A stretch of 64,000 bases of DNA from Selaginella moellendorffii (GCF_000143415.4 NW_003314263.1:870165-934164), one strand, 5' to 3'; positions 8,807 to 64,000 are shown, counted from the stretch's first letter. Translations and numbers: made by a program. The notes: a model not told the origin generated them from the letters alone.

Positions 8807-9745
8807 ATGTCAGTGCTTGACGCGTATAGCTTCCGCGAGGAGAGAGTGCCAAGGTATGGCTATGGCGGCATCGATCGCGGCATACCAAGGGTGGGCTACA
8901 ATGGTAGCAACGAGAAGGTGGTCATCAAATCGATGAACCAAGATCCCAGGGTCTTCGACATGGATCGCATCGAGGAAGAGTTTGATCTCATGATAGAGTG
9001 CGAGCACAAGAACGTCCTCAAGGCTCTCGACGTGGGCACCGACGAGCACTACTACACTTACATGGTTTTGGAGTATATCGACTGTGATCTCATGGACTTC
9101 TTCGGCCAGGACAAGGTATACTACAGCATCTCCAAGGCGGACAAGATCCGGGAGATCCTGCGCCAGATTCTTTTAGGGCTTGCATGCATGCACGGACGTG
9201 GGGTGGCGCACCAGAACGTCGGCTACTACAGCCTGCTGGTCAAGCGCAATTACGACGAGTTTGTGGTCAAACTGACGGATTTCAGCTGTGCGAGGAGGAT
9301 TACGACGCCGGCGAACCCGGAGATTGCGGGATCACCGGAATACAATGCTCCGGAAGTTCTTCGCATGGAAGCCGAGAGGATGGGAACTACGGCTGATATT
9401 TGGAGTGCCGGTGTTGTTTTTTTGCAGATGCTAATGGGATACAACCCTTTTTACCCTGGGATTAGTCATCAGAAAGAGAGAGAAAAGGTGGTGGACGAGA
9501 TTCATAGATTTCTTGACGAAGATATGTTTAAGTTGATTGAGGACAAGGCTGCAGTGGAATTGTTGAAAGGTATGCTAGCTTGGGATCCAGAGAAGAGATT
9601 TACTGCCGAAGAAGCGTTGGATTCACCATACTTAGCGGTACAAACACCACCGGTTATTAGAGAAAACAAGGTCGTGGTGAAAGTAGAAGATCGCCCCTCT
9701 ACAGGTTTTTGGACAGAGGTTGCCAAGATCTTCTCGCTGGCTTGA
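8807..9745 (+). CDS. Intronless CMGC/CDK-like kinase-fold protein, type A; probable pseudokinase
   Basis: VVIK, EHKNV, HQNVGYYSLL in place of HRDLKPxN, DFS, GSPEYNAPE, DIWSAG and DPEKRFTAEEAL. The Gly-rich loop is degenerate. Confidence 0.85.
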   Translation: MSVLDAYSFREERVPRYGYGGIDRGIPRVGYNGSNEKVVIKSMNQDPRVFDMDRIEEEFDLMIECEHKNVLKALDVGTDEHYYTYMVLEYIDCDLMDFFGQDKVYYSISKADKIREILRQILLGLACMHGRGVAHQNVGYYSLLVKRNYDEFVVKLTDFSCARRITTPANPEIAGSPEYNAPEVLRMEAERMGTTADIWSAGVVFLQMLMGYNPFYPGISHQKEREKVVDEIHRFLDEDMFKLIEDKAAVELLKGMLAWDPEKRFTAEEALDSPYLAVQTPPVIRENKVVVKVEDRPSTGFWTEVAKIFSLA

Positions 9746-9776
9746 TATTGAATTAAATTTCCAGCTTACAAGGTTT

Positions 9777-12700
9777 TTAGTAGGCGGAGTTACTGAGAAA
9801 ACTTACAATGCACCTGTTTTTCTGGAGGAGCTCGTCTAGTCTCTTCCATGTCGAGCTTTGCACTTCACGCAGCGTCTCTGCTTTGTCTCGCAGCTGCGAG
9901 TAAGTGAGAATGCTCTCGCCGTGGATCTGCGGTGAATCGAAAGCGTTAATCGCTTCCAAAAGTGATAGAGAAAAACTTACTCGAAGCACGAGTAGCATTA
10001 CTGCCTGGACAAAGTCGAAATCTCTGTTTAGAGACGTAGCTTTGATGAGAAAGTCGATGAGCGAACCGATATCCCGGATCTGTTCCTCGGGAGCATCCTC
10101 GTCTACTATTTGCAAGAAGCGAATTTCGGCGTCGAGAGATGACGATGTCAAGTTTTTCATGTGCTCCAAAAGCTCCAGACCTTGAGAAAAACAAAAGTTA
10201 GCTGCTTCTAAAGAACCAAAAGAGCTTACATTCTCCGCTTCTGGCAAAGTCGTGAACGAGCTGGATAAACTGCGATGGCGTGTCCGCTCCAGTAGATAAA
10301 GACTGCAAACGGACCGACTTGGTTTTCTGCGAGTCTTGGTCTGGAGAAGCGAACGCAGGGACACCAGAGAGAGAAGGAAGCGTTGGCAAGAAAAACGGAG
10401 CTCTCTCCGGTTTTTTAGGCGCTGCTATCGGTTTGTTGCGAGCCTGGAATTCATCATAGACATTAGAAGTCTTCCTAAAAGAACTTTGCGTACCTTGACT
10501 GTATCAAGATGCACAAGACCTTGCCACTGGTTTTTCGGAAGTAGCGATAAGGTTACCAGCTCTGGAGTGATTTGAGCAGTGCTGGGGAGCTCGGACTTCT
10601 CTTCTAGGCCAGGCAACTCAATATTATCCCGAGAAACTTTTTCTGGATTACTGTCCCCGCCTTCTTCTGGCCGAGATCCGGTCGACGATGGGAGCGCGAC
10701 ATCTTTTACGGCATTTCCGCTTCCAAGTTCAATATCTCCAGCAGAGTACATGTAGCGATTACCCCTGCAAATTTTCAGAATTAAAAAACTAAGAATAAAG
10801 AAAAAAACTAAAAGAGCTCACCAAAGATATATGCCTTTGTGATTTACGTGACATGTAGCCAACATGTCCATGCCTGGTGATAGAGAGAGGGCCGTGATTG
10901 CAGCATTTACACGCATTGCGTCCAGTTGCTTTGCTGCAACCACATCCCATACTCTTACAGTTGCATCCATAGCCGAGGACAAGAGCCATTTCCCATCCTC
11001 ACTGAAAGTGAAATCGGTGATCCGGTCTGTGTGGCCCGAGAAAACTCGAACCAGCCGCACTGCAACCATGTCGTACAATCTTATAACGTGGTCGTCTGAC
11101 GATACCGCAGCGAGGCCTGATAAAAGAAAGGTTTCTCAGCAGAGGGTTACACAAGTTCTTGAAGATGACGTACCGTTCCCACGGTGGTAAGTCATTTTTA
11201 TTATCGGAGAGCCGGGACTAATAGAGGCTTTTAGCTGCAAGGACTTGAAGTTCCACACCTGAAATCGCAAGGTCTGGCAGTGATAACACAGTGTCCTCAG
11301 CCATACCTTGATTAACTTATCGTAGCCAGCGCTGAAAAGGCACGCGTTCGTCGCATCTGAAGCGAGACCATGCACTGCTCCTGTATGTGCGCTTTGATCA
11401 GCCAACGTGCCATCGCGGTATGAACCACGGTGAAGTCCCGACTGCAAGTTAAACCGCTCAATGTGTCCTGACGCAGTACCAAGCGTCACAAAATTTCCGC
11501 AAGCACTGATACTGCAAACCTGTCAAAGGATAACATTTGATCATGACAAAACATGCTAGAGTTCTCACCAACCTTCACAGGGCTAGGCTTCTCAGGGCAA
11601 GGCTTGAGGACATGCTCGCCAATAACAAAGTTCTGTAAACGCCAGGTATATGCAGAGCAATCGTCCAGATGACATGTGACGACATTGCACCAGTCACGCT
11701 CTCGGATTTCGGCTGCAACGCAATGACGTTGTGATTAGTTTTGTTTTCCACTTCACAAAAATTTACCTGCGTCAAAGGCGACGATAGGTGCGAGCTTTAT
11801 TTCTTCTTCCTGAGAAGCTGAACAGCAACGAAGTTAGTACAAGCATGAAATCAACAAACACCGACCTTTAGCTTTAGCCTTTTAGCGCGCTTGGTTACAT
11901 TCCCTTGAGAAAGCTCTCTGCTCTGTTGATCCTGATATATATATGCAAACATGTGCTAAGATAAGATCCAAATTTATAACTCAAGAACTCACTTGAATGG
12001 TCGAAAATAAGCGGAAAGCTCGGTCTTGGCCACCGGACAAGATGCATCGCCCTTCACCGTAGTACCTGCAAAAACTCAAGATAAGCATAGGACCCTAAAA
12101 ACTCTCGAAGACCTTATGCACGTAGGTGGAGCGCTGTGACCACTCCTGTACCGCAGAAGCCTTGCATCACCATCTAATGAATCAAATATCCACATCTGCG
12201 AGAATTGACGCTAAAGTAAGTTGCCGAGGAAAATAGCAGAAAGAGACAGAGGGAAACCAAACCTTCAAAGAATTGTCCTTTGAGTTGCTCATTAATACAG
12301 GTTCGTTAGCTAGAAAATGCAAAGACGCTACTTCTGAGTCGTGAGCGTCGTTGATAACAGTCTGCAGTTTCTTCTTTTCCAAGTCCCAAATACTTATGGC
12401 ACCGGATGATCCTCCGGCAGCCAAGAACGCGTGACCATCTGTAGGATACAGTTCATATACAAGATAAACAAAGATATCTAGCATGCATACCTGTCCTGAA
12501 CGAAAGTGCCGTCACACCCCCTCTGGTAGTATGTGTGAAAGTGGCAATAGTTTCATCGTATCGGATATTGTGCACATGGATTTTCCCATCTCCACACCCG
12601 ATTCCAACGACGTCCAGCGCTGGAGACGATACGCAAGTAAGAACGGGAGAGTTCCATCCTTTGAACTCATGGACCATCTTTCTGGATTTAATATTCCAAA

Positions 12701-13469
12701 GCTGTAATCGGCCATCCTCGAAACCAAAAAGGACCTGTCAAATAAGAGAAACGACAATGGGGACGCACATAAGTTGGCAATGAGCAGTTCGCAATGAGAT
12801 TACTGACCTTGTCAAGGTATGTTTGTGGATGCATCAAGCATGTCACGCCACGACCAAGATGGAGTTCTGCAATCGGCTTACCGTCTTCCTTCGTAGAAAG
12901 AATACCCGTGTCCCACACACAAACGTGTCCTTCAGTGTCGGAACTCAAGATGAAGTGGCCGAATTCCAGTAGATATTTAATTTTGCTCGAGTGAGCTTTC
13001 CACACAGCGATCTGAATCAATCAAGTTTCAATCTTAGCAGAAACTTGCAAGAGCAACCAAACAAAAAAAAAACAGAAAAGGAAAAAAAAAAATCGCACCT
13101 GGTGTGCTCGATCGAAAACCACTACATTATTTCCACTGGCTGCAAACGTAAAGCCTTCATAGCAAGCCAACGCTCTGATGGATTTTTCCAGCTGAGGACC
13201 TGCTTAAAAACAATGAAGTTACTCACCTCTGCTTGCAAAAGAAAACAAAAACCGACCTACAAAAACCAGCAGTAGCTTCGAGCACTGCAACACACAATCC
13301 CGTCAAGAAAGGAAATTCGCGCAAAGAATCTGGCAACACTCACATTGAATCGCTGCCACGCCTTGCCGACGCTCACCGTGACGAGCGTCTCAACGCCGCT
13401 CCGCTGCACTGCGAATGGGACGCCATCGCTGATGTAGCCGATCGCCCGGAAGGCTTCGAAAATGCCCAT
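9777..13469 (-). CDS. UTP21: U3 snoRNA-associated protein 21 (WDR36), multi-exon WD40 protein
   Basis: Starts MGIFEAFRAIGYISDGVPF; continues MHPQTYLDK, SPALDVVGIG, FNLQSGLHRGSY, GHTDRITDFTFSEDGKW, LVTLSLLPKNQWQGLVHLD and a Utp21 C-terminal region (DFDFVQAVMLLVLR). Confidence 0.93.
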
Positions 13470-13471
13470 GC

Positions 13472-13560
13472 CGCCCTAAAACCCTAAACCCAAATTTTCG
13501 ACACTCCCGGGATTCGAACCCCAATCGGTCACCCTTTTCCGATTCGCCTTTACTGCGACT
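13472..13560. promoter_or_regulatory. Divergent UTP21 / kinase-B promoter-leader with telo-box (AAACCCTAA); copied at ~54026-54096 and ~63304-63387
   Basis: The string gccctaaaaccctaaacccaaattttcgacact...gcctttactgcgact occurs three times in the window. Confidence 0.7.
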
Positions 13561-13640
13561 CCATCTTTTTCTTGAAGCTGGGTACCTTTTTCTGCAAAAC
13601 AAATCCTTTAGGTTTTCCTAACCATTCATTTTCTCGAGCG

Positions 13641-14642
13641 ATGGCAGACTATGTGTGGGCGAGTGGCGCGAGGTTGCTAGGCGCTGGAGCGGATGGAGAG
13701 GTGAGGGTTGGGTTCCACCGAAAGACTGGAGACAAAGTAGCCATGAAGAAGATGTACGAGCACGAGTACCTTTACGATGCCATCATCAACGAGTCGGAGA
13801 TCCTGGAAGAGGTAGCGCACGACAACGTTGTCAATCTCCTTGGGTTGACCTGCAACAACCAGGGTACGTTCATGGCGATGGAGCTCATGGACGGGAGTTT
13901 GAGCGATGTGATCTCGTCACGCAAGCTTGGGGAGCACGACATCAGGGCCGTGATGCGCCAGATCCTCGAGGGCCTGGCGTGGATTCACGCGCACAGAATC
14001 GTTCACCAAGACGTCAAGACGAGCAACGTTCTCGTCAAAAGGGATGGAGAGAAGAATAAGTTTGTTGTGAAGCTGGCGGACTTCGCTACTGCGAGGAGGC
14101 TGCGGACACGCCCCTGGTCGAACAAGGTCGGGACCTTAACGTTCAATGCTCCGGAGCTTCTCAAGGGTGCCACCAGCTTTGGCACCGCAATCGACGTGTG
14201 GGGCGCCGGGTGTATATTCGCGGAGATGCTCCTGGGTAGCAATCCCTTTGACGTGCCCGACGAGGAGGATGGGGACTCGCTCGACTATTTTGTGGCTGAT
14301 TTCGCCAAGAAGCTGGACATCGATGGCTGTGGCATGGGCTATCAAGACAGGCGACGAGAGCGAGCACGCGAGAGGATCTTGGAGAAGATGGCATGGTGGA
14401 AAGCCGAGGACGTGAGAAGTGGAATTAAAGACCCCGATGCGGTGGAGCTGCTCAAGAGGATGCTGGCAATTGATCCGGCGAGGAGGATCTCGGCGCAAAA
14501 CGCCTTGAAGATGCCATATTTCCAAGAGAAGGCCGACGACACAGCCAGGCCAGTGCTCCTGACAATCACGACTGCGAGTGGAAATTTTAGACCAGCTTGG
14601 GTTAAAATCAACAATGCAGCCCCATCAATAGCTACAATGTAA
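13641..14642 (+). CDS. Intronless CDK/CMGC-like Ser/Thr kinase type B (non-RD, HQD), copy B1, intact
   Basis: LGAGADGEV, VAMK, HQDVKTSN, DFA, GTLTFNAPE, DVWGAG and DPARRISA. ATG at 13641. Confidence 0.88.
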   Translation: MADYVWASGARLLGAGADGEVRVGFHRKTGDKVAMKKMYEHEYLYDAIINESEILEEVAHDNVVNLLGLTCNNQGTFMAMELMDGSLSDVISSRKLGEHDIRAVMRQILEGLAWIHAHRIVHQDVKTSNVLVKRDGEKNKFVVKLADFATARRLRTRPWSNKVGTLTFNAPELLKGATSFGTAIDVWGAGCIFAEMLLGSNPFDVPDEEDGDSLDYFVADFAKKLDIDGCGMGYQDRRRERARERILEKMAWWKAEDVRSGIKDPDAVELLKRMLAIDPARRISAQNALKMPYFQEKADDTARPVLLTITTASGNFRPAWVKINNAAPSIATM

Positions 14643-14764
14643 ACAATGCTTGTGAAGACTGTGAATGTATACATTCAAAGTTTTGCAAAACATTTTATCT
14701 TTTTCTCTAAGTACATCATGTAAAGAAAAAAATTAAAAAAGAATTATAATTATGTTTCTAATTT

Positions 14765-15323
14765 TGTCTCCTAGAACTCACTGCTCGGACCTGTCACTGG
14801 AAATGGCAACTTAGAAGCGGCAGCGCGGTTCTTCGAGCGTTTTCCCGAGAAGAACGTCGTCTCCTACAACACCATGATCGCAGGGAATGCTCAGACCGGA
14901 GAGTTAAGCTCTTGCTTTGATCTGGTGGCGAAGATGGCAATCGAAGGACTCACTCCCGACGAGCAAGCCTTCAGTGTTCTCGCTGCGTCCAGCCATGGCG
15001 GAAAGCTAGAACAGGGACTCCACCACCTTGTGCTCATGAGCGGCGACTTTGGAATCACATCTTTGAGGGAGCACTACGATTCAGTCACAGACATCCTGGG
15101 ACAGGCCGGGAACCTGGAACTCGCTCGCGAGGTCGTCCAAGCCATGCCATTTCTCCCGGATCTTCTGGCTTGGGGGTCGCTACTCGGTGGCTACCAGATG
15201 CAAAGTGGCCAAGGCTTCACGCAACGAGCAGCCAGGAGCGTTTCCGAGCCGGGCTTGGGGCGAGCAAACAGCCATACCAAGTGGCACACAAATTCACGTT
15301 ATATCATTGATTTTAAAATATGA
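14765..15323 (+). pseudogene. PLS-class PPR gene 3' fragment (P1)
   Basis: FERFPEKNVVSYNTMIAGNAQ and LREHYDSVTDILGQAGNLELAREVVQAMPFLPDLLAWGSLLG (C-terminal PPR and E-like motifs). No 5' part. Confidence 0.8.
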
Positions 15324-15422
15324 TCTGTATGATCAAACTACACCCTGGTTTACATTTATCTCTTCATGTACTAACAGTAAGCGCTCACCAAGTTGGCTGA
15401 TGGAGGCAGGTATTTAACACAC

Positions 15423-16334
15423 TCACGCTGCTCGAACTTTCTTGACAACCAAGTCGCTACTAAAACCGGGAGCACTCCTCTTCACTCCACAGCGCCTCCT
15501 CTTTTGAATCGTCTTACTGCTGCAATTCTCCACGATCCAGGGATGCTCCAGCACACCATCCAGTGTCAACCTCTCGCTCGGCTCCACAGCCAGCATCCCG
15601 CAGATGAGATCCTCCGCCTCGTCTGAGAGAGGACAACCATCCGGGAATTCCCCGGCTCGCAACAACTCGATTTCCCTGGATTGCTTGTAGCCTCTCAGCA
15701 GCTCATATGCGATCACTCCCAGCGCCCACACGTCGATGGCCGCAGTGTAAAAGCTCTGCGACCTTGCGTCACCCTTGCAGCTCGTCACCTCCGGGGCCAT
15801 ATACTTCCCGGTTCCACAGCACTGCGACATCTCCTTGGGGTCGTCCGTGGCCACGCCGAAGTCTCCAATCACCACCTCGTGCACGGCAGTGGCGTCCAGC
15901 TTGACGAAGATGTTCTCCGGCTTGAGATCCCGGTGGACGATGCCGCTGCTATGTATCCCCTTGAGCGCCTCCGCCAGCCTCTGGATGGTCTTGGCGGCCT
16001 CCTCCTCGCCCAGCGGCCCTCCCTTGATCAATCGATGGAACAGGCTAGGACCGCACAGCTCCATCACCATGGTCCCGTAGCAAGCCCCGCCGCTCCTCTC
16101 CTTCACGAAGCCCGCCAAGGAGACCACTCCAGCGCATCCGCGGAGCTTGGACATGAGCCGGAGCTCTCTCCCGGCGTCCCTCCCCGCTCGAAACATCTTC
16201 CCAGCGTAGCTCGTGGCCCCCTTGAGCACGAAAACCTGGCCCTGGCTCCCGCAACCCAGCCTCTCGCCCCTCGTGTAGATCTTGAGGAGCTCGGCACAAT
16301 CGTCGTCCTCAAACTCAACGTCTTGGCGGACCAT
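15423..16334 (-). CDS. Intronless CAMK-like Ser/Thr kinase type C, copy C1, intact
   Basis: LGCGSQGQV, YAGK, HRDLKPEN, DFG, CGTGKYMAPE, DVWALG and EPSERLT..VLEHPW. ATG at 16334. Confidence 0.9.
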   Translation of the reverse strand: MVRQDVEFEDDDCAELLKIYTRGERLGCGSQGQVFVLKGATSYAGKMFRAGRDAGRELRLMSKLRGCAGVVSLAGFVKERSGGACYGTMVMELCGPSLFHRLIKGGPLGEEEAAKTIQRLAEALKGIHSSGIVHRDLKPENIFVKLDATAVHEVVIGDFGVATDDPKEMSQCCGTGKYMAPEVTSCKGDARSQSFYTAAIDVWALGVIAYELLRGYKQSREIELLRAGEFPDGCPLSDEAEDLICGMLAVEPSERLTLDGVLEHPWIVENCSSKTIQKRRRCGVKRSAPGFSSDLVVKKVRAA

Positions 16335-17251
16335 CGCAGAGCTTCTCCTCTCGCGCAAGCTTCCTTGAGATGAGAAATAAAAAGGGTAGAAACCCTAGCT
16401 TCTCATAACGACTATTTGTCGACGGTTGGGATGGCGAGGAAGAACTTTGATGTGTTTGCCGCTCAACACCACGCACAACCCCAAGAACAAGCTTGGGGCG
16501 TCAACTCCCAAGAAGGGTGAATATTCAATAAACAATTAGATTATTCTCGGCTAGATCGCAGCCACATCTCAGCCGACGGCAGAAAGTAGTTCATCCACTT
16601 TGCATGCGTTAGATCGAGGAGTGAAGGTTTGGAAACTTGCCTTTGTATGAGAAACACGCAACTCCTTGAGAAGGAGCACGAGCTCCTCCAGTTTCCAGTT
16701 GATTGCAAGTCGTTTATAATCCTAGAACAAAGCTTGCAAGGTGAATCCTTGTGAAGAACATGAAAGGTTTGTAGAGGAAGCAAACCTTGTAGCTTTGCTC
16801 GTATACAGGACATGCTTGCAGTTCTGGGAGCCTCAGCCGCTCCCTGTGCTTTCAAATCCTCAATGTCTCGCTCACTAGAACTCCTTTTAAAAACCAACAT
16901 GTTAAACTCATTTAGAAACTTGTTTTTTTATTTTTTTAACAAGTTTTTCTTTAATCTCACTTAATGAGTTTTTCTTAATCATTTTAACGTCTATATTTCA
17001 CCATCAATCATTCTGTCTTTGCCGATTTTGATATGTAAGTGCATAAATGTTCTGAGGCAAGCCTTTCACGTGTTGCAGCCAGGTGACTTGGCCTTCCTCT
17101 CTACTTCAAAAACCTGATCAACATAAACATACCAAGCTTCATGAGCAGTCCTTGGTGCTCTCACTTGAAGAATATCATGAGATTTTGGCCATATTGGAAC
17201 AACATCCCCTGATTCAAGAAGTTTACATGGTAGCCTTGAGGATTTTACATC

Positions 17252-20250
17252 CTAAACAATTTGATCTCCACGCCATTTTCCATCTGGGATCAGAACCACA
17301 CATATCTCATGCTCTATGAGCTCAACAGGTTGAATGCAATCAACGCTGAACTTATGCATTGCGCTTGTAAGCAGATGCATACTCGAAAACTCATATTTTT
17401 CTGGATGGCCATTTGTTATTTCATAACGAAAATAATCTACTGCAAAGTAAACCTGCAAGAGAATACAAAATATACATAACATAAAATAAAATAAAATATG
17501 CTTTAACTTGTAGCTTTGTTCAAACTTATGACTAAAAGCATATTTAAACTTCTTAATCCAAGGAAGTTCTTCCCAAGTTCGATTCTTCACTACAATGTGA
17601 ACATTTTAGCCTCCAAAGATATATCCCACTGCGAAAGTAAATTTGAAGTGAATCACCTTGTTATTGGACTATGCATCCTCACTTTTATTGTTGAATCCTG
17701 CAATTGCATTAAGCTCATGAACACCAATAGGTCACTTAACTCCCTTGCCAATAAGAATTCCCTTCTCCTTTATCAGATCGTCCCTGTTAGAGTTTGGAGC
17801 CTCTGCAAATAAAGCTTTAGCTACTGCTTGGCAAAATACTCCAATACATCATGGGGAAAAAGGATTGAAAACATTGCAGAGAAAGAAAGTGTTTGATTAG
17901 CATTGGTGTTTTTAACTTCTTGCAAGCATTTTAAACCAATCCTTCCCAATGGTTTCGAGGAAGAAGATGATCATGATCTTGAAAGTGTAAAGCTTGTACT
18001 CTAGTAAAAAACAACCTGGGAAAACAACAAATTAGAAATGATTTATCCTATTATTATTTGAAGCACCTGCTATGGATCCTAGAGAAAGTAATATGTCCAT
18101 TTGTTTGTGATTTTTCTTCATGTTGTTAATATCACCAAACATTCTTAGCACCATGTTGCATCATGTGGTCCAATATGAAATATATCTTGAACCATATGCC
18201 TAGCTACGATACATGATCTCACTAGAACATTTTACCAATAACACTCCTGATAATAAACAGTCCAAAACTAGCAATGATTCAACATTTAAACCATGGTCTC
18301 ATCCAAAGTCATAAAAAATCATTGCAATAACAGTGTTTAGTTATATAAGTTTAAGATCATCTAGATCCTCTAGAAGTCCTATTGTAAAAACTGATGATGC
18401 TCACATGCTTTCCAAAAAGCTAAGCATTCCAAAGGTCTTTCTAGCGGTCAACCAACTTTCATGCTTGAGGACCTCTTCTACAATATTAGCTGAAGTCCTT
18501 CCTTTGCAATTGCTTCCTTCTTAGCCTCTCAGACTTTCTTCCACATCATATTATTTGTATCTTGCAAAAGCGAAGAAATAGTATGCATAGCATCAAAAAC
18601 AGAATCATGGAGTAAGTCTAGACCATGGTAAACTCTATGTAGAGCAGATTTGCCTCTTGGTCCATAACTCTTTTCTGTAGAGGTATTTCCCATTTGAAGA
18701 TGATTAATAGCTACCTCGACTTCTTCCATCGTTTGACATTGATCTCAGTCTCTTGGTTTTCTGCCAAATATCTCTATAAAGTTTCTACTTTCTAGTATTA
18801 CGAATTGAGCAATATCTACATGGATTTCCTCCCACTGCAGAAGAATAGAAAATATAAAGTGGTTACAAATGATTAAATAGAAGAAAGAACTTACTAAAGC
18901 TCATCTTCAATAGCTCACATGCAGAACTTTTGTTCAAGCCCTAAAATCTAAACTACTGAAAGTTAAATATAGAGTTTATCTATAATGAATATTTAGTTGC
19001 GTGTCCATTCAGGTACAAATCTTCTAACTGTTGCATGATATGATCTAAAAAGACGTCAAGAACATTTGCATTGTCCATATTGTTAGGTAGCTCATCCTTC
19101 TAAATATACAATACTGGCAGAATGAGTTCCTCAACCTCGTGAATGCCTTGTGTCCCTTCGTTGAGCATGACAATATTATGCTTCTCATTTTAGTTGATGT
19201 TACTTGAAAACCATCAGCGTATAGCATTAGTGCTAAATTTTGTGGATCACCATTTGCAAACCTTGGATTGCATGGGACATCACTGCTGCATTCTGGGCAT
19301 GTAGTAAAACTACAACCATGACAATGATTGTACTATTGACTAGAGAACGTTATATGTCTTTGTGGCCAAGTCTGAATCCATCTCTTGCATGACAAGCAGT
19401 GAATTGGAAGCTCAAAAGTTCTACCACTATCGCAGAATGCAAAGTACCTTATCCATTTTGAACTATGCCAAACTTGTTTCATTGTACCCTCCATCTTTGG
19501 ATCACGTTTATGTTGAAGTTCATTGAAGTTGATGGTAGTCAACTTGCACCATAAGTTCAATCTTTCTATGATTAGTTTAGGGTTTAGGGGTTCAAACCAA
19601 TCTGTTCAACGTCACCGTCAACCAAACCAAGAAACTTTAATGAAGGTGCATTATCGTGAAAACAAACAACATGACACTACACAATCCTATGTCTTTGTAA
19701 AGGGTTTGCATTAACTCTGTGGTATCTTGATTCCAACCACCACGAGCACTCAAAAGTTTGGGAAGAGAACCATCAACGTCGTCCTTAAATCAAATCTGTA
19801 AAATATCATCTGTCATATGCTGCAAGCAATGAGGCTTATCCAGCAAGGCCATCATACTCAAAATCTTTTGGAAAGCATTGTCATCACTAGACAAAACCTT
19901 TGTACTAGTGACTGAAGAAACTTAGTAGTTGTGAATCTATAAAAAGTTTATGTTTTGGTGTCATGATATTTATATCTGATAAAAGACATAGAAACTAATC
20001 AATTTTTACATCATTCTATAATCCATACCATCAGTTGCCTTAAAGTTAGTGTAGCTGGAGCTCTCACTTGTAGTAGCATCTAAAAAAAAACAAAAACAAA
20101 AATGATTTAGGATCTAAAATCAAATTCAGTTTTAAAATTACATGAAACACCTTTATCTGATTCTTTGTTTGTAAATATCTTACAAGCTTTATAAACCACA
20201 TTGACTCCAAGAGGATTTCTTAACTTGCATTATGCACATAAGCACCTGAA
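17252..20250 (-). mobile_element. Decayed CACTA/EnSpm-like (Tnp2-family) transposase, copy T1
   Basis: Piecing frames together gives VWHSSKW...FANGDPQNLALMLYADGFQ, LDVFLDHIMQQLEDLYLNG and DSVFDAMHT. These parallel Tnp2 motifs DPRNxxLxLxxDGF, DVFLxPLxxEL and DxMH. Short introns, stops and frameshifts are present. Confidence 0.7.
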
Positions 20251-53144: not shown

Positions 53145-53439
53145 ATGCCGAGTATATTCTCTTAGGGTAGGGCGTAACAATTTTGCAGTAAAGTATATCT
53201 TTAGAATATGCTCATTTCAATGCCTAGCCCCTTCTAGATCTATGCGCGACAAATCTCGATTTCGCGCTAGAAATCTTGATTTCTACTGTAGGAATTGCTC
53301 TGGTCGGTGTGTGCTCACCAAGGGAGAATCTGCTGTGTACCCGATTTTTTTCGAGTACCAGAATTAATGGTTTTTTGTTCTTCTCTTTTATATCCAGATC
53401 GAGAGTGTGAGGCTTCTTCCAAGAGGGCAATTGTTCTAG

Positions 53440-53840
53440 AATGTTTGGAGGTGGATACAGGAAAGGCGATGGATTGCCTGCTGTAAGCACTGCGAACATT
53501 TTCTCTGCGCTTAAGCGAAAATCCAGCAAGAAGAAGTCGGACAAGCATGCATTGCAAAGCAGCCAGAGTAGTTTTGGGTGCCAAGTCCGGCTACCGTCAA
53601 GTCTTGGGCCGATGTCGAGGACGACAACGATTACTTTGCGACCACCGCTCTGCTGCCAACCATAACAACAAAGGCCTCGCAGGAATCCTCTGTGAACCCT
53701 GACTTGAATCACTTGGAGGTAACCATCTTTTTTCGTAGCTCTCCTCTTTTTCCTTTTCTGTTCTTCCTGATGGTATGTATGTTAGGATTCGACGATGATG
53801 CCGACAAAGAGGTCGAAGAAGAGAAAAGCGGTGTCGTAAT
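53440..53840 (+). pseudogene. 5' fragment of a conserved uncharacterised plant protein (N[IV]F[SA]AL..KKKKSDK / KSWADxxD motifs)
   Basis: STANIFSALKRKSSKKKSDK and PSPATVKSWADVEDDNDYFATT. Frameshifted, and cut at ~53840 by A''. Confidence 0.6.
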
Positions 53841-53844
53841 TCCA

Positions 53845-54010
53845 TGCCCCATGTCAATCACGTCCAAAACGTTTTCGTGTTTGCAATTTGCCATGATCTC
53901 AAGCTCCTTGAGGATTTGCTTGTGAACCTCCTTATTTCCTAGCACTACTCTCTCGCCCAGATGATCGTATCCATGCGCCACCGCAGACGCATAGTTATAT
54001 CTGCCCAACA
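53845..54010 (-). pseudogene. Inverted partial duplicate of the A' N-lobe (A'')
   Basis: GRYNYASAVAHGYDHLGERVV..CKHENVLDVIDMG. Confidence 0.78.
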
Positions 54011-54141
54011 GTTTATGGAGAAACGCGCCCTAAAACCCTAAACCCAAATTTTCGACACTGAATCGGCCACCCTTTTTCGTCGCCTTTACTGCGACTATAA
54101 AAGAGAGTGTTCCTCCATAGGGTTTCTCCATAGCTTGAGAA

Positions 54142-54919
54142 ATGAAAGTGTTGGGCAGATATAACTATGCGTCTGGATATGGCGAAAGCTCTGCGGTGGC
54201 GCATGGATACGATGATCTGGGCGAGAGAGTCGTGATAAAAAATATGGGTAAAGGCAAGGAGGTTCACAAGCAAATCCTCAAGGAGTTTGAGATCATGGTA
54301 AATTGCAAACATGAAAACGTTTTGGACGTGATTGACATGGGGCTAGACAAGGACGGGAATTACTACATGGTATTCGAGCATACTAATGGTAACGTGTTGG
54401 AGTATCTACAAATGGACCTTTCGAAAGCTGGCAAAGAATCGGAGCTTGGTTCGAGGTTTTTCACCAGGGAAGAGAAGATCAAGGAGATAATGCGCCAGCT
54501 CCTTCTAGGGCTTGCATGGCTGCATGAACGTGGGGTGGCGCACCAGGGCATGACAAAAGATAACGTCCTGGTGAAGGTCAAAAGGATGTGATTTCAAGGT
54601 GAAGCTGGGCGATTTTAGCTGTGCGAGGAGGCTTTGCAACAATCCCCCAGAAACAACCCTGAAAGTGGGAACTGCGGTGGACATATGGAGTGCTGGGATA
54701 TTGCTAGTGGGGATGCTCTTGCCATTGGAAATGCCTGAGCTACCAGAGAAAGAGGCTAAAGGAGAGGTGTTGGAGACGATCAAAAAATTTCTCCAGGCTT
54801 TGGATGATTTAATCAAGGACAAGGACGCCCTGGAGTTAGTCAGATCGATGCTAGCATCTGATCCAGTTACTGCCCGGCAAGCTTTAGCTTTCAGGTATTT
54901 ACATCACAATACCCAATAA
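54142..54919 (+). pseudogene. Kinase-fold type A' copy, frameshifted (+1 A at ~54581)
   Basis: gtcaaaaggatg here versus gtcaaaggatg in the other two copies. Confidence 0.82.
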
Positions 54920-55442: not shown

Positions 55443-56363
55443 ATGGCAGACTATGTGTGGGCGAGTGGCGTGGGGTTGCTAGGCGCTGGAGCGGATGGAG
55501 AGGTGAGGGTTGGGTTCCACTGAAAGACTGGAGACAAAGTAGCCATGAAGAAGATGTACGAGCACGAGTACCTTTACGATGCCATCATCAACGGGTCGGA
55601 GATCCTGGAAGAGGTAGCGCACAACAACGTTGTCAATCTCCTTGGGTTGACCTGCAACAACCAGGGTACGTTCATGGTGATGGTGCGCCAGATCCTCGAG
55701 GGCCTGGCGTGGATTCACGCGCACAGAATCGTTCACCAAGACGTCAAGACGAGCAACGTTCTCGTCAAAAGGGATGGAGAGAAGAATAAGTTTGTTGTGA
55801 AGCTGGCGGACTTCGCTACTGTGAGGAGGCTGCGGACGCGCCCCTGGTCGAACAAGGTCGGGACCTTAACGTTCAACGCTCCGGAGCTTCTCACGGGTGC
55901 CACCAGCTTTGGCACCGCAATCGACGTGTGGGGCGCCGGGTGTATATTTGCGGAGATGCTCCTGGGTAGCAATCCCTTTGACGTGCCCGACGAGGAGGAT
56001 GGGGACTCGCTCGACTATTTTGTGGCTGATTTCGCCAAGAAGCTGGACATCGATGGCTGTGGCATGGGCTATCAAGACAGGCGCCGAGAGCGAGCACGCA
56101 AGAGGATCTTGGAGAAGATGGCATGGTGGAAAGCCGAGGACGTGAGAAGCGGAATTAAAGACCCCGATGCGGTGGAGCTGCTCAAAAGGATGCTGGCAAT
56201 TGATCTGGCGAGGAGGATCTCGGCACAAAACGCCTTGAAGATGCCATATTTCCAAGAGAAGGCCGACGACACAGCGCTCCCGAAAATGACGACTGCAAGT
56301 GGAAATTTTAGACCAGTTTGGGTTAAAATCAACAATGCAGCCCCATCAATAGCTATAATGTAA
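55443..56363 (+). pseudogene. Kinase type B, copy B3 (CGA>TGA stop at 55521, ~72-bp in-frame deletion)
   Basis: ttccactgaaag versus ttccaccgaaag in B1. Lacks ELMDGSLSD...IRAV. Confidence 0.85.
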
Positions 56364-56494: not shown

Positions 56495-57023
56495 ATTTTG
56501 TCTCCTGGAACTCGGATCTGTCACTGGAAATGGCAACTTAGAAGCGGCAGCACGGTTCTTCGAGCGTTTTCCCGAGAAGAACGTCGTCTCCTACAATACC
56601 ATGATCGCAGGGAATGCTCAGGCCGGAGAGCTAAGCTCTTGCTTCGATCTGGTGGCGAAGATGGCAATCGAAGGACTCACTCCCGACAAGCAAGCCTTCA
56701 GTGTTCTCGCTGAATCCAGCCATGGCGGAAAGCTAGAACAGGGACTCCACCACTTCGTGCTCATGAGTGGCGACTTTGGAATCACAGCTTTGAGGGAGCA
56801 CTACGATTCAGTCACAGACATCCTGGGACGGGCCGGGAACCTGGAACTCACTCGCGAGGTCGTCCAAGCCATGCCATTTCTCCCGGCTTGGGGATTTCTA
56901 CTCGGTGGCTACCAGCCAAGGCTTCACGCAACGAGCAGCCAGGAGCGTTTTCGAGCTGGGCTTGGGGCGAGCAAACAACCATACCAAGTGGTACACAAAT
57001 TCACGTTATATCATTGTTTTTAA
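56495..57023 (+). pseudogene. PPR 3' fragment (P5)
   Basis: MIAGNAQAGE..HYDSVTDILGRAG. Confidence 0.78.
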
Positions 57024-57077
57024 AATATGATCCGTATGAAAAAACTACACCCTAGTTTACATTTATCTCTTCATGTA

Positions 57078-57910
57078 CTAACAGTAGGCGCTCACCAAGT
57101 TGGCTGATGGTGGCATGTATTTAACACACGCTGCTCGAACTTTCTTGACAACCAAGTCGCGACTAAAACCGGGAGCACTCCTCTTCACTCCACAGCGCCT
57201 CCTCTTTTGAATCGTCTTCTTGATCTTACTGCTGCAATTCTCAACGATCCACTCCAGCACACCATCCAGCGTCAACCTCTCGCTCGGCTCCACAGCCAGC
57301 ATCCCGCAGATGAGATCCTCCGCCTCTGAGAGAGGACAACCATCCGGGAATTCCCCGGCTCGCAACAACTTGATCTCCCTGAACTGCTTGTAGTCTCTCA
57401 GCAGCTCATATGCGATCACTCCCAGCGCCCACACGTCCATGGCTGTAGTGTAAAAGCTCTGCAACCTAGCGTCGCCATGACCATCCTTGCAGCTCGTCAC
57501 CTCCAGGGCCATATGCGACATCTCCTTGGGGTCGTCCGTGGCCATGCCGAGCGCAGCATTTGCTCGAAGAGATCCAACACGTTGCTCGTGTCTCCCGCGT
57601 GGCTGTGAGCTTCCAGCAGCGAGTTCCAAGTCCCCAGATCTTGCTGCCTCGATCCATGGAGTGGAAGACTTGGCGAGCTTCGTCCACACTCCCGCACTTG
57701 CCATAGAAGCTGACGAGCGAGCTCCCAACAACGGGATCGTCCCTGTGGAGTGATCCAATCTCCTCGGCGTGGATCTTCCTCCCAGTTTCCAGATCCCCCA
57801 GGCTTCCACAGGCTTTGAGCACCGCGGCGAAAGTTAGAGAGTCGAGCTCCACCGCCAGCCTCGCCACTCTCCGCGTAGCCGAAGATGAGAGTGTTTACGC
57901 AACAGGTCCT
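57078..57910 (-). pseudogene. PPR-kinase C chimera (C'3), near-identical to C'1
   Basis: Same 243-, 133- and 143-aa ORFs as 35678-36528. Confidence 0.82.
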
Positions 57911-58899
57911 CGATTGTGATGGTAACAAATGAGCTTGTGGAAGTTCCAGAGGTGATCAGAGATGGATTGTTTGCGAGGCAGCACAAAGTTGTGGAGACAA
58001 GAGGCTACTGCATCATGCAGCTCGTCCTCTGCAATCTTCATGTCCTGGCCATGAATCACAAGCCCTCTCAGCACGGTCTACTTTGGGAGGATCACTGCCT
58101 GCCAGTTTCTGGTTTATTTTATATTTTACTTAAAGGTCTAGAAATATATTTTTATTTTAAAAGTATTTTTGAAATCTATGAGATTTTGCAAATTTCAGCA
58201 TTTGCAAATCTATTTGCCTTTGTGCAATCTTTTTTCTAGGCCATATTGGTACAAGAGGATGGGAAGTAGGGATGATGAAGAGTGATATAAACAATTTTTA
58301 CATTATTAAGGAGTGGTATGTACAAAATTAAGTGTAAAGTGGATGGTGAATTTTTTGCATGTGAGGAATTATCCAATTGAAGACTTGATCATCAATAATA
58401 CACTCCCAGATGGAAGCCTACAAGAGGAAGTTGAGGCAGAGATCAATAAACGTATATGTACATTACCCTATGCCATGCTCCATGATTTATAAGACTTGCC
58501 ATGGAACACTCTACCACCAATATACTTCTAATGCCAAAATAGTGTTTAATTGCAACAAAGTTTCAATTTTTAACTTTATGCAAGATGTGAACATCCTCCA
58601 ACTCAAAGCTAGAGTGTATTATCTTGCCTCTCACATGAAACAAGTGCACTAGCTTATCTTTGACAGAGTTCTAACCTTGCAATAATGGGCACAAACCTCC
58701 CCTTAAGGGAGCAAACTCTATTAGAGAAGGAATGTAACTGAGGCAGAGATTGAGGCATTGGCCCATCCCTCAAAGATGCATAAGATCATGGATCAAATAA
58801 TCTTCAAAAGCACAAAACTAAAAAACAGCAATGGAGCCATGGTACATAAAAGTGAAGGCAAAATAGCAATGGAGCTATAGTACATAAGTTTGTGGAGGT

Positions 58900-59350
58900 T
58901 TTAAGGGATAAAAATTATTATCACCTCATTATGGAAATATTTACTTAGGGATGTGCTGCTAAAACAAAAAAGCATAAGGCAACAATCATGATTAAGCAAG
59001 TAGTCAAGATAGTGCACAAGATGCACAAATATCAAGTCTAAAAATATCCTTTTAGAGTTTTGGGAGAACTTGCTTGGGAACATAAAGTTGGTAGACTTTT
59101 GGAGCATCATCAAGGTTTTCAAAGAAGAGGAAGTATGATCAGAGATCTTATCTCCTGGCCATATTTACGACAAGAGAGGTTGACATGTGGAGCATGGGGA
59201 TTGTTTTATACAAGATGTTTTCTGGGAAGTGTGCATTTCCAGAGTTGGTGTCATAAGAAATTGAGAAGAGACTGGGATGTTTGGAAGATTTGCAATGAAC
59301 TCTTTTGACTCCAAAATCAAGCAAATGTAAGGAAGATGAATTTGAAGCTG
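58900..59350 (+). pseudogene. Decayed kinase remnant (D2)
   Basis: Direct copy of D1 with further deletions (gaggttgacatgtggagcatggggattgtt shared). Confidence 0.55.
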
Positions 59351-60004
59351 GTTTTTTAACAGCCGAAGCCTAGAAAATGGTGTGTAAAAATGAAGTGGGA
59401 AGAAAAATAATTGAAAACTATAATCATAAAGCCAAACAAAATTTAGTTACAATGCATGAACTGTTCACTAAAAAATCACTCATATGCAGTTTTATAACCA
59501 AACTGTACAATTATGCATGAAGAAGTAAAGCTTTTATCAATGACAAAGTTTCTTTATGGATATGTTAAATTGTATAGTCAGATAAAAAGCCAGAATACAT
59601 TGATATATCACTAAACTCTTTCATGACTGCTACTAGGACGAGCAAAGTAATTTTATTATTTCATAAAATGAAATTAAAGTCAGTTTTAGAGCGTCGCCAT
59701 TCTCATGCTACGGCTTTGAAACGGTTATTGTTCAGTGGCCAATCAACTGACATTTCAACTGAAGCTGCGGAAAGCTGGTTGCGCCAAATGCCAGGAGTCG
59801 GATGAAAGAAAAAAGAAAAATAAAATGTCAGAGCAGCAGCAGCACCAAAATCTCTCCCCCCACCTCCAAAATCACCACCAAACTCAAAATCACCACCACC
59901 ACCACCACGAGAAGTTGAGCACCACCTCTGCCTGAGCAGCTTGCCGAAACCGCTGGTGGCGCTGCACGCCCGAGTGCCTGTTCGCGCCATACTTCCCGCC
60001 GCAA

Positions 60005-61147
60005 TACATACGTCGTATGAAAAGCTTCTCCACTTTTTCCATGAGATTAGCGGCCTACTCGGAAATATGCAAACAAAAAGTTGTAAAACAACAAAGATGG
60101 CTCACCTTGTCAGAGCTGCTAAAGTACGAGCCCGCAAATAAATCGGCATTGCTTTCCTGCCAGTCACCTAAAATAAAAAACTTCAGAGCTTTCTCTCGAG
60201 TCCTCACAGATTTTCACCGTGACATATTTTTTCAAGATCTTTGCGAATGCCACCACGTTCAAAGAGCTGTAATCAGATGGAATAAGCACGAAAGGATCTT
60301 ACACAGACTAATTTGGAGTCCAAGGCCACGATAAAACTCGATGAATGCCAAGCGCAGCACCTTCTCTGCAGAGTGAACCTTTTTCTTGGTCGCGTGGATG
60401 TCCGTCTCTTGAGATATATTTTTCTTGGATTGGTGTATCAATGCTTGCGAGAGGGACGCTATCGTAGTAGTATGGTGCCGGAGATTTCACGTCTTGTGAA
60501 CAGAATATAGGCTGCCGCTCAAGCGAATTTCCCATCTCAATGCTACTGTTTCCAGCAGGCATTCCTCGAGACGTATCAGCGCGAGATTTCTAAGAGAAAG
60601 CAAACTACCTGAGAATAACTCCAGCGTTTGGCATTTGCCTGCTCAAAGCCTCGGCTCTTTTGCAGTACTCCTCCTCCTTTGTCCTGTAAAACTTATTCAC
60701 GTTGTTAAGATGGCCATCCAGGCGGGCGAATAACATCTTCTCCTCTTCGACCTGTGAAATCGGTCCGAAGTGTTCTGTCTCATAAAGCTCCTCTGGGGGC
60801 AATTGACGCACCTGGAGAACAAAAACTATCAAAGAAGCTTTCAAAGGAAGAACTTTGACAGTTACGAAGAACTTACTCGAAGGACTTCACTCTGGCTCCA
60901 TGTCAAGATCTTCCGCCTGGTGAGACCGCTGAAAGTCCTGAGGGGCGAAGAATCGGCGGGCGAGGGAGAAGAGTCAGCAGCATCAGCAGTAGCAGCACCA
61001 GCACCCCCACCTGGAGAAAAAATTTGCTTCTTGCGGAAGCACCAGCTTGATCTGCTTGAGATCCTTCTTGAACTGCCACTAATCGCGGTAGGCCGATCGC
61101 TTCTCGGGAACAAGATGGCCATCGAGCTGCTTGGAGAACTTGACCAT
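60005..61147 (-). pseudogene. PHO1: PHO1-family SPX fragment, second copy
   Basis: Direct copy of 50730-51851. Confidence 0.83.
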
Positions 61148-61303
61148 GCTGGATGAAAAAGATGATGCATCCCTTTTCTTCTCGTTCTACTTCTAAATGA
61201 AAGACCAACTCTCACCAAGTAAAGCGGTGCCACTGCCAGTCCACACCCCATTTCGCGTGAATCGATCGAGCGAGCAAAGCTTGCCTGCGGTTTTCTGCCT
61301 GTC

Positions 61304-61870
61304 ATGGCGGGGATTGGGATCTGCCGCTGGAAATGCGAGGCCTGGCCGTGGATTCAAGGCGCTCGCGAAGTCCAGGCTCCAGCATTGCCTCCACAGAAGC
61401 GGCAATGCAGGCGCGGTTCTCAAGCACCCATTTTGTTTTCCTTTTCGTTTCTCTCGCATCGCAGCGCTCTGATATGGATGGATCGAGCGCAGCAACAGGT
61501 GCGCGGCGTGTATATCGACTGCAAGGGGCTGAATTTCGAGCAAGCCATGGCGCGCTATGGCCGGAAGTTGCGACAGGACAAGACGCTAAGCTCAATGATC
61601 TAGTACTACGTAAAGCCGTCGGAGCAGCGGCACCAGGCGGAGAAGGAGCGTGTCAAGCGAACCAAGAAGAGGCTCTTCCTGGAGAAGCTCAAGTTCGTCT
61701 TGATGCTGCGAGCAAGGTTTGCATTCCTCCTTTTGTTCTTCATCCACCATAGCTGGTTTTCATTTCTTCTTCCTTTCTCTTTCTCCTCGGAGAAATCCAT
61801 TCTTTTCCTTTTTGCGAGATGTTGAATCGCTTAGTGATGATCTTCTTCTCGTTTATCCAGAGGGCTGTGA
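61304..61870 (+). pseudogene. RPS21: RPS21 second copy, disrupted at ~61586-61603
   Basis: gacgctaagctcaatgatctag replaces gacgctcactgatctgctcaagaaggag and introduces a TAG stop. Confidence 0.75.
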
Positions 61871-61957
61871 TCGAACTTTGGTGATCTTCTTTTAATTTGT
61901 TTTCCTCTCTACTTCTGTTTTTATGAACTAACAAGAGCCCTAAGTTTCTTTTCTATC

Positions 61958-62434
61958 ATGGCCTCGGGAGGGCCTCTTCTCGCTCTCGACGATCTCATCC
62001 ATGATCTTAGCAAAGATCCAGCATCACCGAATTTCCCCTGGTTGGATCGCCCATCAGCAACGCAACAAGATGATCATCTCCCTCAGGATCTCGATCTCGT
62101 AGAGGTGCTTTCTCTTTCTTTCAATCCCTCGATCAGTGCTCAGGAATACCACCGTTGCAGGAAATCCAGGAGACCTGCCGCGATCTCAATGCCGCATTGG
62201 AGCGCCCCGGCTACGCTTGGACCTCGCTCAACCAGAAGGTGGGTCGCCTCCATCGGTCGATTCCTCCCCAATTTCTCATGTGGGTCGTGTGGGAAATCTC
62301 AGCTATGCACGAGCCTGGCCGCGGCAGCCGAGATCGTTCGAATCAGCCACGCGAATTTCGCGCAATTGCTCCAGAAACTCCAGGCCCTGCGCGCGATTGT
62401 TAGCAGGGGAGAAGGAACCCTAAAGATGGTATAA
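61958..62434 (+). CDS. Second copy of the 118-aa coiled-coil gene
   Basis: ORFs identical to 52668-53144. Confidence 0.63.
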   Translation: MASGGPLLALDDLIHDLSKDPASPNFPWLDRPSATQQDDHLPQDLDLVEVLSLSFNPSISAQEYHRCRKSRRPAAISMPHWSAPATLGPRSTRRWVASIGRFLPNFSCGSCGKSQLCTSLAAAAEIVRISHANFAQLLQKLQALRAIVSRGEGTLKMV

Positions 62435-62717
62435 ATGCCGAGTATATTCTCTTAGGGTAGGGCGTAACAATTTTGCTGTAAAGTATATCTTTAGAATATG
62501 CTCATTTCAATCTAGATCTATGCGCGACAAATCTCGATTTCGCGCTAGAAATCTTGATTTCTACTGTAGGAATTGCTCTGGTCGGTGTGTGCTCACCAAG
62601 GGAGAATCTGCTGTGTACCCGATTTTTTTCGAGTACCAGAATTAATGGTTTTTTGTTCTTCTCTTTTATATCCAGATCGAGAGTGTGAGGCTTCTTCCAA
62701 GAGGGCAATTGTTCTAG

Positions 62718-63118
62718 AATGTTTGGAGGTGGATACAGGAAAGGCGATGGATTGCCTGCTGTAAGCACTGCGAACATTTTCTCTGCGCTTAAGCGAAAAT
62801 CCAGCAAGAAGAAGTCGGACAAGCATGCATTGCAAAGCAGCCAGAGTAGTTTTGGGTGCCAAGTCCGGCTACCGTCAAGTCTTGGGCCGATGTCGAGGAC
62901 GACAACGATTACTTTGCGACCACCGCTCTGCTGCCAACCATAACAACAAAGGCCTCGCAGGAATCCTCTGTGAACCCTGACTTGAATCACTTGGAGGTAA
63001 CCATCTTTTTTCGTAGCTCTCCTCTTTTTTCTTTTCTGTTCTTCCTGATGGTATTTATGTTAGGATTCGATGATGATGCCGACAAAGAGGTCGAAGAAGA
63101 GAAAAGCGGTTTCGTAAT
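62718..63118 (+). pseudogene. Second copy of the KSWAD-motif protein 5' fragment
   Basis: Direct copy of 53440-53840. Confidence 0.58.
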
Positions 63119-63122
63119 TCCA

Positions 63123-63288
63123 TGCCCCATGTCAATCACGTCCAAAACGTTTTCGTGTTTGCAATTTACCATGATCTCAAGCTCCTTGAGGATTTGCTTG
63201 TGAACCTCCTTATTTCCTAGCACTACTCTCTCGCCCAGATGATCGTATCCATGCGCCACCGCAGACGCATAGTTATATCTGCCCAACA
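63123..63288 (-). pseudogene. A'' inverted partial duplicate, third copy
   Basis: Direct copy of 53845-54010. Confidence 0.76.
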
Positions 63289-63432
63289 GTTTATGGAGAA
63301 TCGCGCCCTAAAACCCTAAACCCAAATTTTCGACACTCGGATTTGAACCCCAATCGGCCACCCTTTTTCGTCGCCTTTACTGCGACTATAAAAGAGAGTG
63401 TTCCTCCATAGGGTTTCTCCATAGCTTGAGAA

Positions 63433-64000
63433 ATGAAAGTGTTGGGCAGATATAACTATGCGTCTGGATATGGCGAAAGCTCTGTGGTGGCGCATGGATA
63501 CGATGATCTGGGCGAGAGAGTCGTGATAAAAAATATGGGTAAAGGCAAGGAGGTTCACAAGCAAATCCTCAAGGAGTTTGAGATCATGGTAAATTGCAAA
63601 CATGAAAACGTTTTGGACGTGATTGACATGGGGCTAGACAAGGACGGGAATTACTACATGGTATTCGAGCATACTAATGGTAACGTGTTGGAGTATCTAC
63701 AAATGGACCTTTCGAAAGCTGGCAAAGAATCGGAGCTTGGTTCGAGGTTTTTCACCAGGGAAGAGAAGATCAAGGAGATAATGCGCCAGCTCCTTCTAGG
63801 GCTTGCATGGCTGCATGAACGTGGGGTGGCGCACCAGGGCATGACAAAAGATAACGTCCTGGTGAAGGTCAAAGGATGTGATTTCAAGGTGAAGCTGGGC
63901 GATTTTAGCTGTGCGAGGAGGCTTTGCAACAATCCCCCAGAAACAACCCTGAAAGTGGGAACTGCAGTGGACATATGGAGTGCTGGGATATTGCTAGTGG
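63433..64000 (+). CDS. Kinase-fold type A' pseudokinase; frame open to the window end (3'-incomplete; not in the ORF track)
   Basis: ATG at 63433, MKVLGRYNY...GVAHQGMTKDNVLVKVKGCDFKVKLGDFSCARR...VGTAVDIWSAGILLV, without the stop or frameshift seen in the other copies. Confidence 0.75.
   Translation, partial: MKVLGRYNYASGYGESSVVAHGYDDLGERVVIKNMGKGKEVHKQILKEFEIMVNCKHENVLDVIDMGLDKDGNYYMVFEHTNGNVLEYLQMDLSKAGKESELGSRFFTREEKIKEIMRQLLLGLAWLHERGVAHQGMTKDNVLVKVKGCDFKVKLGDFSCARRLCNNPPETTLKVGTAVDIWSAGILLV

Follow-up and report, generated by a model that had tools for sequence, protein, structure and literature searches.

We analyzed a stretch of 64,000 nucleotides (nt) of the Selaginella moellendorffii genome (GL377567.1:870165-934164, assembly GCA_000143415.2; hereafter the window), which contains a cluster of intronless protein kinase genes and their remnants. 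Kinase pieces were located by tblastn with three intact proteins and 307 fetched kinases, combined with a reading of the translations. This yielded 19 kinase-derived pieces, namely one A, three A', three A'', three B, four C, three junctions of PPR and C sequence (PPR-C junction pieces) and two D. About 19 kinase-derived sequences of the same kinds had been counted in a first-pass annotation of the window, and all pieces were recovered at the implied places. Coordinates below are those of the window, with the strand given as (+) or (-).

An intact reading frame is retained in 7 of the 19 pieces: A, A'3, B1 and C1 to C4. A (8807-9745, +) is an intact intronless open reading frame (ORF) of 312 residues, a predicted pseudokinase that is present once and was not involved in the recent duplications; it appears to be unannotated, since neither the protein collection nor the gene-position index lists it as a gene product. 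B1 (13641-14642, +) encodes an HQD-type (non-RD) kinase of 333 residues, and C1 (16334-15423, -) a CAMK-like kinase of 303 residues with the motifs HRDLKPEN and DFG. The other C genes are intact as well; C2 (30580-31491, +) differs by 1 nt from C1, and C4 (45904-46815, +) by 1 nt from C3 (38689-37778, -). A'3 starts at 63433 (+) and runs past the window end at 64000; completed from the adjoining DNA, it forms an intact frame of 258 residues and is likewise a predicted pseudokinase.

The other 12 pieces are either fragments or damaged by stops, frameshifts or deletions; two A' and two B copies, of three each in the window, are among them. A'1 (34594-33830, -) has a stop codon at the Gln of the HQG motif and has lost four codons, A'2 (54142-54916, +) is frameshifted near 54588, B2 (33271-32272, -) is frameshifted by a 2-nt deletion, and B3 (55443-56363, +) lacks an internal segment and contains a stop in the reference frame. 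The A'' pieces are inverted N-terminal fragments of A' (A''1 at 34654-34875, +; sister fragments at 53847-54014 and 63125-63292, both -), and D1 (49621-50035, +) and D2 (58880-59316, +) are decayed kinase relics with in-frame stops. In PPR-C junction piece 1 (35712-36528, +) a PPR fragment precedes the C-terminal third of C, with the junction at approximately 36055-36092; this piece recurs at 47856-48605 (-) and 57078-57809 (-). The C-derived parts of these pieces (approximately 36092-36479, +; 48243-47856, -; 57514-57127, -) hold merely the last 120-150 residues of C. The PPR element between B1 and C1 (14775-15320, +) is also a truncated relic, of about 180-200 residues or roughly two PPR motifs, with copies at 31594-32139 (-), 37067-37675 (+), 46931-47296 (-) and 56496-57020 (+). 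Database gene models of 510, 476 and 397 residues extend across broken copies, PPR relics or spacer lying upstream.

Each kinase frame is one continuous ORF, in contrast to the WD40 gene located between A and B1, which consists of many exon-sized frames. A hydrophobicity scan of the A, A', B and C kinases showed no signal-peptide-like N-terminus and no hydrophobic stretch of transmembrane grade, the most hydrophobic 19-residue stretch of each being the ordinary alpha-F helix. The G + C content at third codon positions (GC3) is 0.62-0.77 in the intronless kinase ORFs (8807-9745, 13641-14642 and 15423-16334) and 0.41-0.56 in the exons of neighbouring intron-containing genes (1155-13020), and the high values fit biased gene conversion or a distinct history. 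Each intact C gene is also overlapped by an antisense open frame of 230 residues (15681-16373, 30541-31233, 38036-38728 and 45865-46557), which most likely results from the high GC3 of C and does not represent a gene.

For each type we scored the Gly-rich loop, the VAIK Lys, the catalytic-loop Asp, Lys and Asn, the DFG Asp and the APE motif. In translation and alignment, A has HQN and DFS, and the Asp, Lys and Asn of its catalytic loop are missing. In A', with HQG and DFS, the catalytic Asp is missing too and part of the activation segment is deleted. B (HQD-VKTSN and DFA) contains all catalytic motifs except the Arg of HRD and the Gly of DFG, and looks catalytically competent as far as motifs can predict. 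The full set is present in C (HRDLKPEN and DFG). Variants of the form HQ[D/N/G] and DF[A/S/T/H/D] are common to the whole clade to which A and B belong, and A and A' are predicted to be degenerate pseudokinase offshoots.

Pfam PF00069 (Pkinase) matches the whole domain in A (5.5e-41), B (3.6e-56) and C (2.3e-43), in all cases exceeding the curated cut-off by a wide margin; the junction pieces align with the C-lobe of the model only and score below that cut-off. Among solved structures, the best matches are CDK9 and CDK2 for B (E about 1e-35), CaMKI gamma for C (E 9e-32) and CDPK and DAPK for A. In word-based searches, close relatives of B (80-94% identity) are all from S. moellendorffii, after which identity drops to approximately 33% with fungal CDKs, and C has about 19 Selaginella relatives, 44-100% identical and encoded on at least 10 scaffolds, followed by plant CDPKs at 38-40%. 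The same kind of search with A returned no close relative, nor A itself; an exhaustive representative search returned single-domain relatives at 39-45% identity, again all from S. moellendorffii. Protist proteins with multiple kinase domains scored highest for A at approximately 30% identity, but these were rejected as relatives of interest because their high scores arise from several domains adding up. A foreign or viral origin was also dropped: among outside relatives, plant CDPKs, fungal CDKs and protist CAMKs come closest, and no viral hallmark gene is present in the window, only a gypsy relic.

In a phylogenetic tree, A and A' group together (support 100/99) as sister to B (99/99), in a Selaginella-only clade that lies beside CMGC and outside the well-supported CDK+MAPK clade (99/96). 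C is placed among the CAMK-type references, in a separate clade on a long stem that contains Selaginella sequences only. From the tree and the shared motifs it follows that the three types represent two lineages, with the pseudokinases as offshoots of the HQD, non-RD family. The genes thus belong to two intronless kinase families that are found only in Selaginella in the databases searched. Several features listed in the first-pass annotation are borne out by these data: single-exon kinases without signal peptide or transmembrane segment, the gradient of motifs from HQN/HQG through HQD to HRD, which we read directly in the translations, and an affinity with CMGC and CAMK kinases and not with RLK/Pelle kinases, as seen in the structural matches to CDK, CaMK and CDPK and in the position of the clades among CMGC and CAMK references. 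Its three kinase types are not all unrelated, A/A' and B being sister lineages.

RefSeq gives the single-domain relatives of A the names 'cyclin-dependent kinase 2' and 'cell division control protein 2 homolog', and CDK9 and CDK2 are the best structural matches of B. Unlike CDKs, however, B has HQD and not HRD, A, A' and B have DFA or DFS and not DFG, identity is only about 30-35%, and the alignment shows no PSTAIRE-like cyclin-binding helix in the helix region of B. Similarly, C shares all catalytic motifs with CaMKI and plant CDPKs, its best matches, but it is no more than a kinase domain followed by a basic tail of about 30 residues. Pfam, consulted for the EF-hand or autoinhibitory/calmodulin-binding segment that follows the kinase domain in those enzymes, returned only kinase-type domains for C. 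The Selaginella genes that RefSeq labels as CDK2-like and CaMKI-like are not orthologues of the enzymes so named. No relevant literature was found on a Selaginella kinase family of this kind, or on its locus tags.

Self-comparison of the window revealed nested inverted and direct blocks of 91-99.3% nucleotide identity that run through intergenic DNA. Palindrome 1 has arms at 13559-21471 and 33352-25348 (99.3% / 98.0% identical) around a 3.9-kb centre, and a direct copy of its PPR-C-spacer part lies at 37117-43674 (92-99% identity). In palindrome 2 (arms 37396-39873 and 47197-44701, 98.2% identical), C3 and C4 face each other head to head; there are three such head-to-head C pairs, counting one just beyond the window. 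The block with the junction piece recurs as 34897-36763 and 58720-56852 (98.4%) and as 34929-37153 and 49396-47195 (95.6%), and older A'-B blocks (33031-34612 and 55683-54124) are 91% identical. A tandem repeat with a 9.3-kb unit (47569-54710 and 56852-64000, +, 95.7% identical) contains a junction piece, a D relic, an SPX gene, an S21-like exon, A'', A', B and a PPR relic. Within it, the SPX-domain gene (minus strand) and the exon similar to ribosomal protein S21 are duplicated together (approximately 50600-52535 and 59890-61749), and the S21-like frame is continuous in copy 1 (51927-52532) and split over two frames in copy 2 (61223-61749). The centre of palindrome 1 is occupied by a degraded Ty3/gypsy retroelement (22155-25100, -) with gag and RT-RNaseH regions; no long terminal repeats (LTRs) or other direct repeats of at least 80 nt were found around this centre.

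The assembly of the window has two gaps, whose missing lengths were estimated by aligning their flanks to the paralogous copy at 18100-18750. At 28213-28312, 100 N stand for approximately 10 nt, with flanks collinear with 18590-18615 of the other arm. At 40692-40952, 261 N stand for approximately 264 nt, collinear with 18385-18650 of the first copy. The spacer around both gaps is AT-rich and non-coding, and neither gap interrupts a kinase frame. As they occur at the same homologous spot, the repeat is where the assembler broke.

The differences between the arms of palindrome 1 are unevenly spread. Of 35 differences between 13559-18597 and 33352-28313, 23 fall in 1.1 kb over B, only 2 in the next 3.2 kb (PPR relic, C and the region upstream of C) and 10 in the last 0.75 kb, giving a mosaic. 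C4 is identical to the next C copy beyond the window, and C1 and C2, like C3 and C4, differ by 1 nt. From these patterns we read a probable homogenisation of the C-containing core through gene conversion.

The cluster extends at least 13 kb beyond the window, where the cassette is repeated: the rest of A'3 is followed by B, PPR, C, a gap and another C. There are six intact, near-identical C copies, four in the window and two just past its end. A C-type protein of the cluster is 100% identical to a RefSeq protein of S. moellendorffii, and the contig that encodes the RefSeq C-type protein overlaps the window end with 100% identity over 7478 nt.

Within the window the succession A', B, PPR, C is seen repeatedly, as the first-pass annotation had described when it proposed a fixed module. 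This order is fixed because one ancestral stretch was copied, intergenic DNA included, and not because the elements were assembled independently each time. Elsewhere in the genome, two intact B genes lie among PPR-DYW genes without C (GL377667.1), and two C-like copies lie without B (GL377629.1). The recurrence of the module is real, but its standing as a functional unit is not upheld, since block copying explains the order and B and C occur apart at other loci. The more distant genes of the A/B clade are single genes among ordinary genes, at a locus found on two scaffolds with the same neighbours. On these scaffolds (GL377660.1 and GL377571.1), the same order of genes (HAD hydrolase, UCH, Mpv17, eIF6 and EMP70) stands beside an A/B-clade kinase; they are probably two haplotypes kept in the assembly, with the kinase retained in both. 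No NLR, NB-ARC or other immune gene is present in the annotated surroundings that we viewed.

We estimated the ratio of non-synonymous to synonymous substitution rates (dN/dS) by the Nei-Gojobori method and assessed departure from neutrality by binomial tests. Among intact C copies dN/dS is 0.06-0.37 (dS 0.005-0.034), and it is 0.50-0.63 between C and the C-like copy at GL377629.1 (dS about 0.10). Intact B copies among themselves give 0.22-0.49 (dS 0.04-0.11) and A' copies 0.33-0.68 (dS 0.01-0.06); counts are small throughout, and comparisons with broken copies mix constrained and unconstrained time. Non-synonymous changes lie below the neutral expectation, with binomial P values down to 6e-6 for B, of 0.003-0.005 for C and of approximately 0.02 for A'. 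Taken as a whole, the A/B and C families consist of real genes on which purifying selection is moderate.

Expression was assessed in sequencing runs. A run search returned about 20 small transcriptome-like runs (13-57 Mb of contigs), containing at most 0.36 of the sampled words of 8700-16400. By our estimate, approximately 0.31 of that interval is taken up by the exon-sized WD40 frames, compared with 0.36 in the best run, which would leave little room for A, B1 and C1. Four transcriptome-like runs from four studies were aligned to 30500-36499, a stretch with C2, a PPR relic, B2, A'1, A'' and one junction piece. None of the four contained a contig at least 99% alike on this stretch, outside which A lies. 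C2 was matched by a few contig pieces only, of 66-160 nt, with variants absent from C1 to C4 and C6; as these variants match no local copy compared, the pieces derive from paralogues elsewhere. For B2 a single contig piece of 187 nt and 94% identity was found, which is not B1 either, since B1 and B2 are 98.3% identical. A'1 was matched by no contig in the four runs. Two spots were well covered (31605-32150 and 35711-36055), by contigs approximately 96% alike that turn unlike the sequence exactly past 32150 and 36055. As the contigs leave the relics exactly at their borders, they represent transcripts of intact parent PPR genes elsewhere. C1, B1 and A'2/A'3 are covered indirectly, because they are similar enough to the aligned sisters that their transcripts would have matched.

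Taken together, we consider it likely, with a probability of roughly 70%, that the window contains a young, still-rearranging segmental-duplication cluster that reflects ordinary birth and death of kinase genes. An ancestral stretch, in which an A'-like pseudokinase was followed by a B kinase, by a truncated PPR fragment and by a C kinase in convergent orientation, would have been copied several times. Its copies would have arisen in inverted (palindromic) and in tandem arrangement, with non-allelic recombination or fold-back repair as the probable mechanism. Gene conversion would have kept the C-containing core alike, and most copies are now dead or dying. A birth-and-death array had already been suspected in the first-pass annotation, and the several tiers of duplication (91-99.3%) and the many dead copies agree with it. 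The same annotation had held that absent expression, or dN/dS near 1 for all types, would point to passive duplication debris; no expression was found for the copies covered, but dN/dS is below 1 and not near it.

Several considerations weigh against this account. Values of dN/dS clearly below 1, together with six intact C copies, could mean that copies are maintained for a function, such as dosage. Assembled contigs lose rare transcripts, and the expression data comprise four runs, whose RNA nature is the guess of the search tool, aligned to 30500-36499 only; A lies outside this test, and B1 and C1 were assessed only indirectly through near-identical sisters. The genes may be expressed under particular conditions, for instance upon pathogen attack or during reproduction. 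Finally, the duplication mechanism and the gene conversion are deduced from sequence patterns only.

One alternative is that part of the copy number is artificial, both haplotypes being present in the assembly and allelic arms having been misjoined into one scaffold. The arms are 98-99.3% identical, the haplotypes in the S. moellendorffii genome paper reportedly diverge to the same order, and both gaps lie at the same homologous repeat spot, where contigs break. Yet the centre of palindrome 1 and 2.9 kb of each arm are contained in one uninterrupted contig, C2 and C3 lie within a single contig and differ by 10 nt, the flanks differ between copies, divergence comes in tiers from 91% to 99%, and the cassette continues beyond the window; we therefore regard such an artefact as unlikely, although it is the least improbable of the alternatives. 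Improbable as well is the possibility that the kinases are cargo of transposable elements (Pack-type, CACTA or Helitron-like capture) and were copied by transposition. The gypsy relic at the centre of palindrome 1 would fit, as would the junction pieces, which join unrelated gene fragments (PPR and the tail of C) as gene-capturing elements do. The duplicated units, however, include ordinary genes (SPX and S21-like), the centre is not flanked by LTRs or direct repeats of at least 80 nt (no systematic search for terminal inverted repeats was made), and the copies are local, in blocks of varying extent, and not dispersed units with fixed ends.

The functional readings proposed in the first-pass annotation, a sensor/decoy-executor locus or a toxin-antidote system, received no support from any test run. 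A lineage-specific signalling or immune module, with A' as decoy or sensor, B as relay and C as executor, shaped by birth-and-death selection, would account for the recurring order A', B, PPR, C, for the motif gradient, which is real, for dN/dS below 1 in all three types, and for the intact state of one A', at least one B and all C copies. Against it, the recurrence is explained by block copying that takes in intergenic DNA, B and C are unlinked at other loci, two-thirds of the A' and of the B copies in the window are broken, the tested local copies left no transcripts in the four runs, neither the PPR element nor the junction pieces are more than relics, and the viewed surroundings lack an NLR or other immune gene. 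We consider this module improbable, ranking just below an assembly artefact. The same low likelihood is given to a related proposal, in which the cassette is a Selaginella-only, condition-specific signalling unit where B, A' and the CAMK-like C act jointly, for example in defence; here C would be kept intact by gene conversion between the arms, and the unit would be stress-induced and silent in the tissues sampled. A selfish toxin-antidote (killer-rescue) cluster is very improbable indeed: it matches the general picture alone of fast-evolving, clustered, lineage-specific genes, but the local copies tested showed no expression, the only domains found are Pkinase, PPR, SPX, S21 and those of the retroelement, with no toxin-like domain among them, and most copies are broken.

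Ordinary birth and death, the explanation we prefer, has known parallels, as tandem and segmental clusters of lineage-specific kinase genes evolve in this way in plant kinomes generally. The window shares with such clusters its local amplification, duplicates of several ages, many pseudogenes, constrained survivors and restriction to one lineage. It differs from them in that its members are soluble, single-domain, intronless CMGC- and CAMK-like kinases and not receptor-like kinases, and in that the amplification is largely palindromic. A resemblance to the ZED1/ZRK pseudokinases and to tandem-kinase resistance proteins can also be seen, as kinase domains predicted to be active and dead occur side by side in a fast-evolving cluster. 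Those proteins are, however, of the RLK/Pelle type, whereas the window kinases are of CMGC and CAMK type; in tandem-kinase proteins both domains are located in one chain, whereas here they are encoded by separate single-domain genes; and ZED1/ZRK pseudokinases work with an NLR, while the window kinases have none in the surroundings viewed.

The cluster would open no new kind of biology unless expression and interaction of its products were later shown. It does provide a clear and well-delimited example of kinase gene gain and loss in a plant genome, with copies that arose as palindromes and in tandem, were probably subject to gene conversion and decayed rapidly. In addition, it brings to light two spikemoss-only families of intronless soluble kinases, one of them an HQD-type clade that has repeatedly been the source of pseudokinases, and is thereby useful for the correction of annotations and for studies of kinome evolution.

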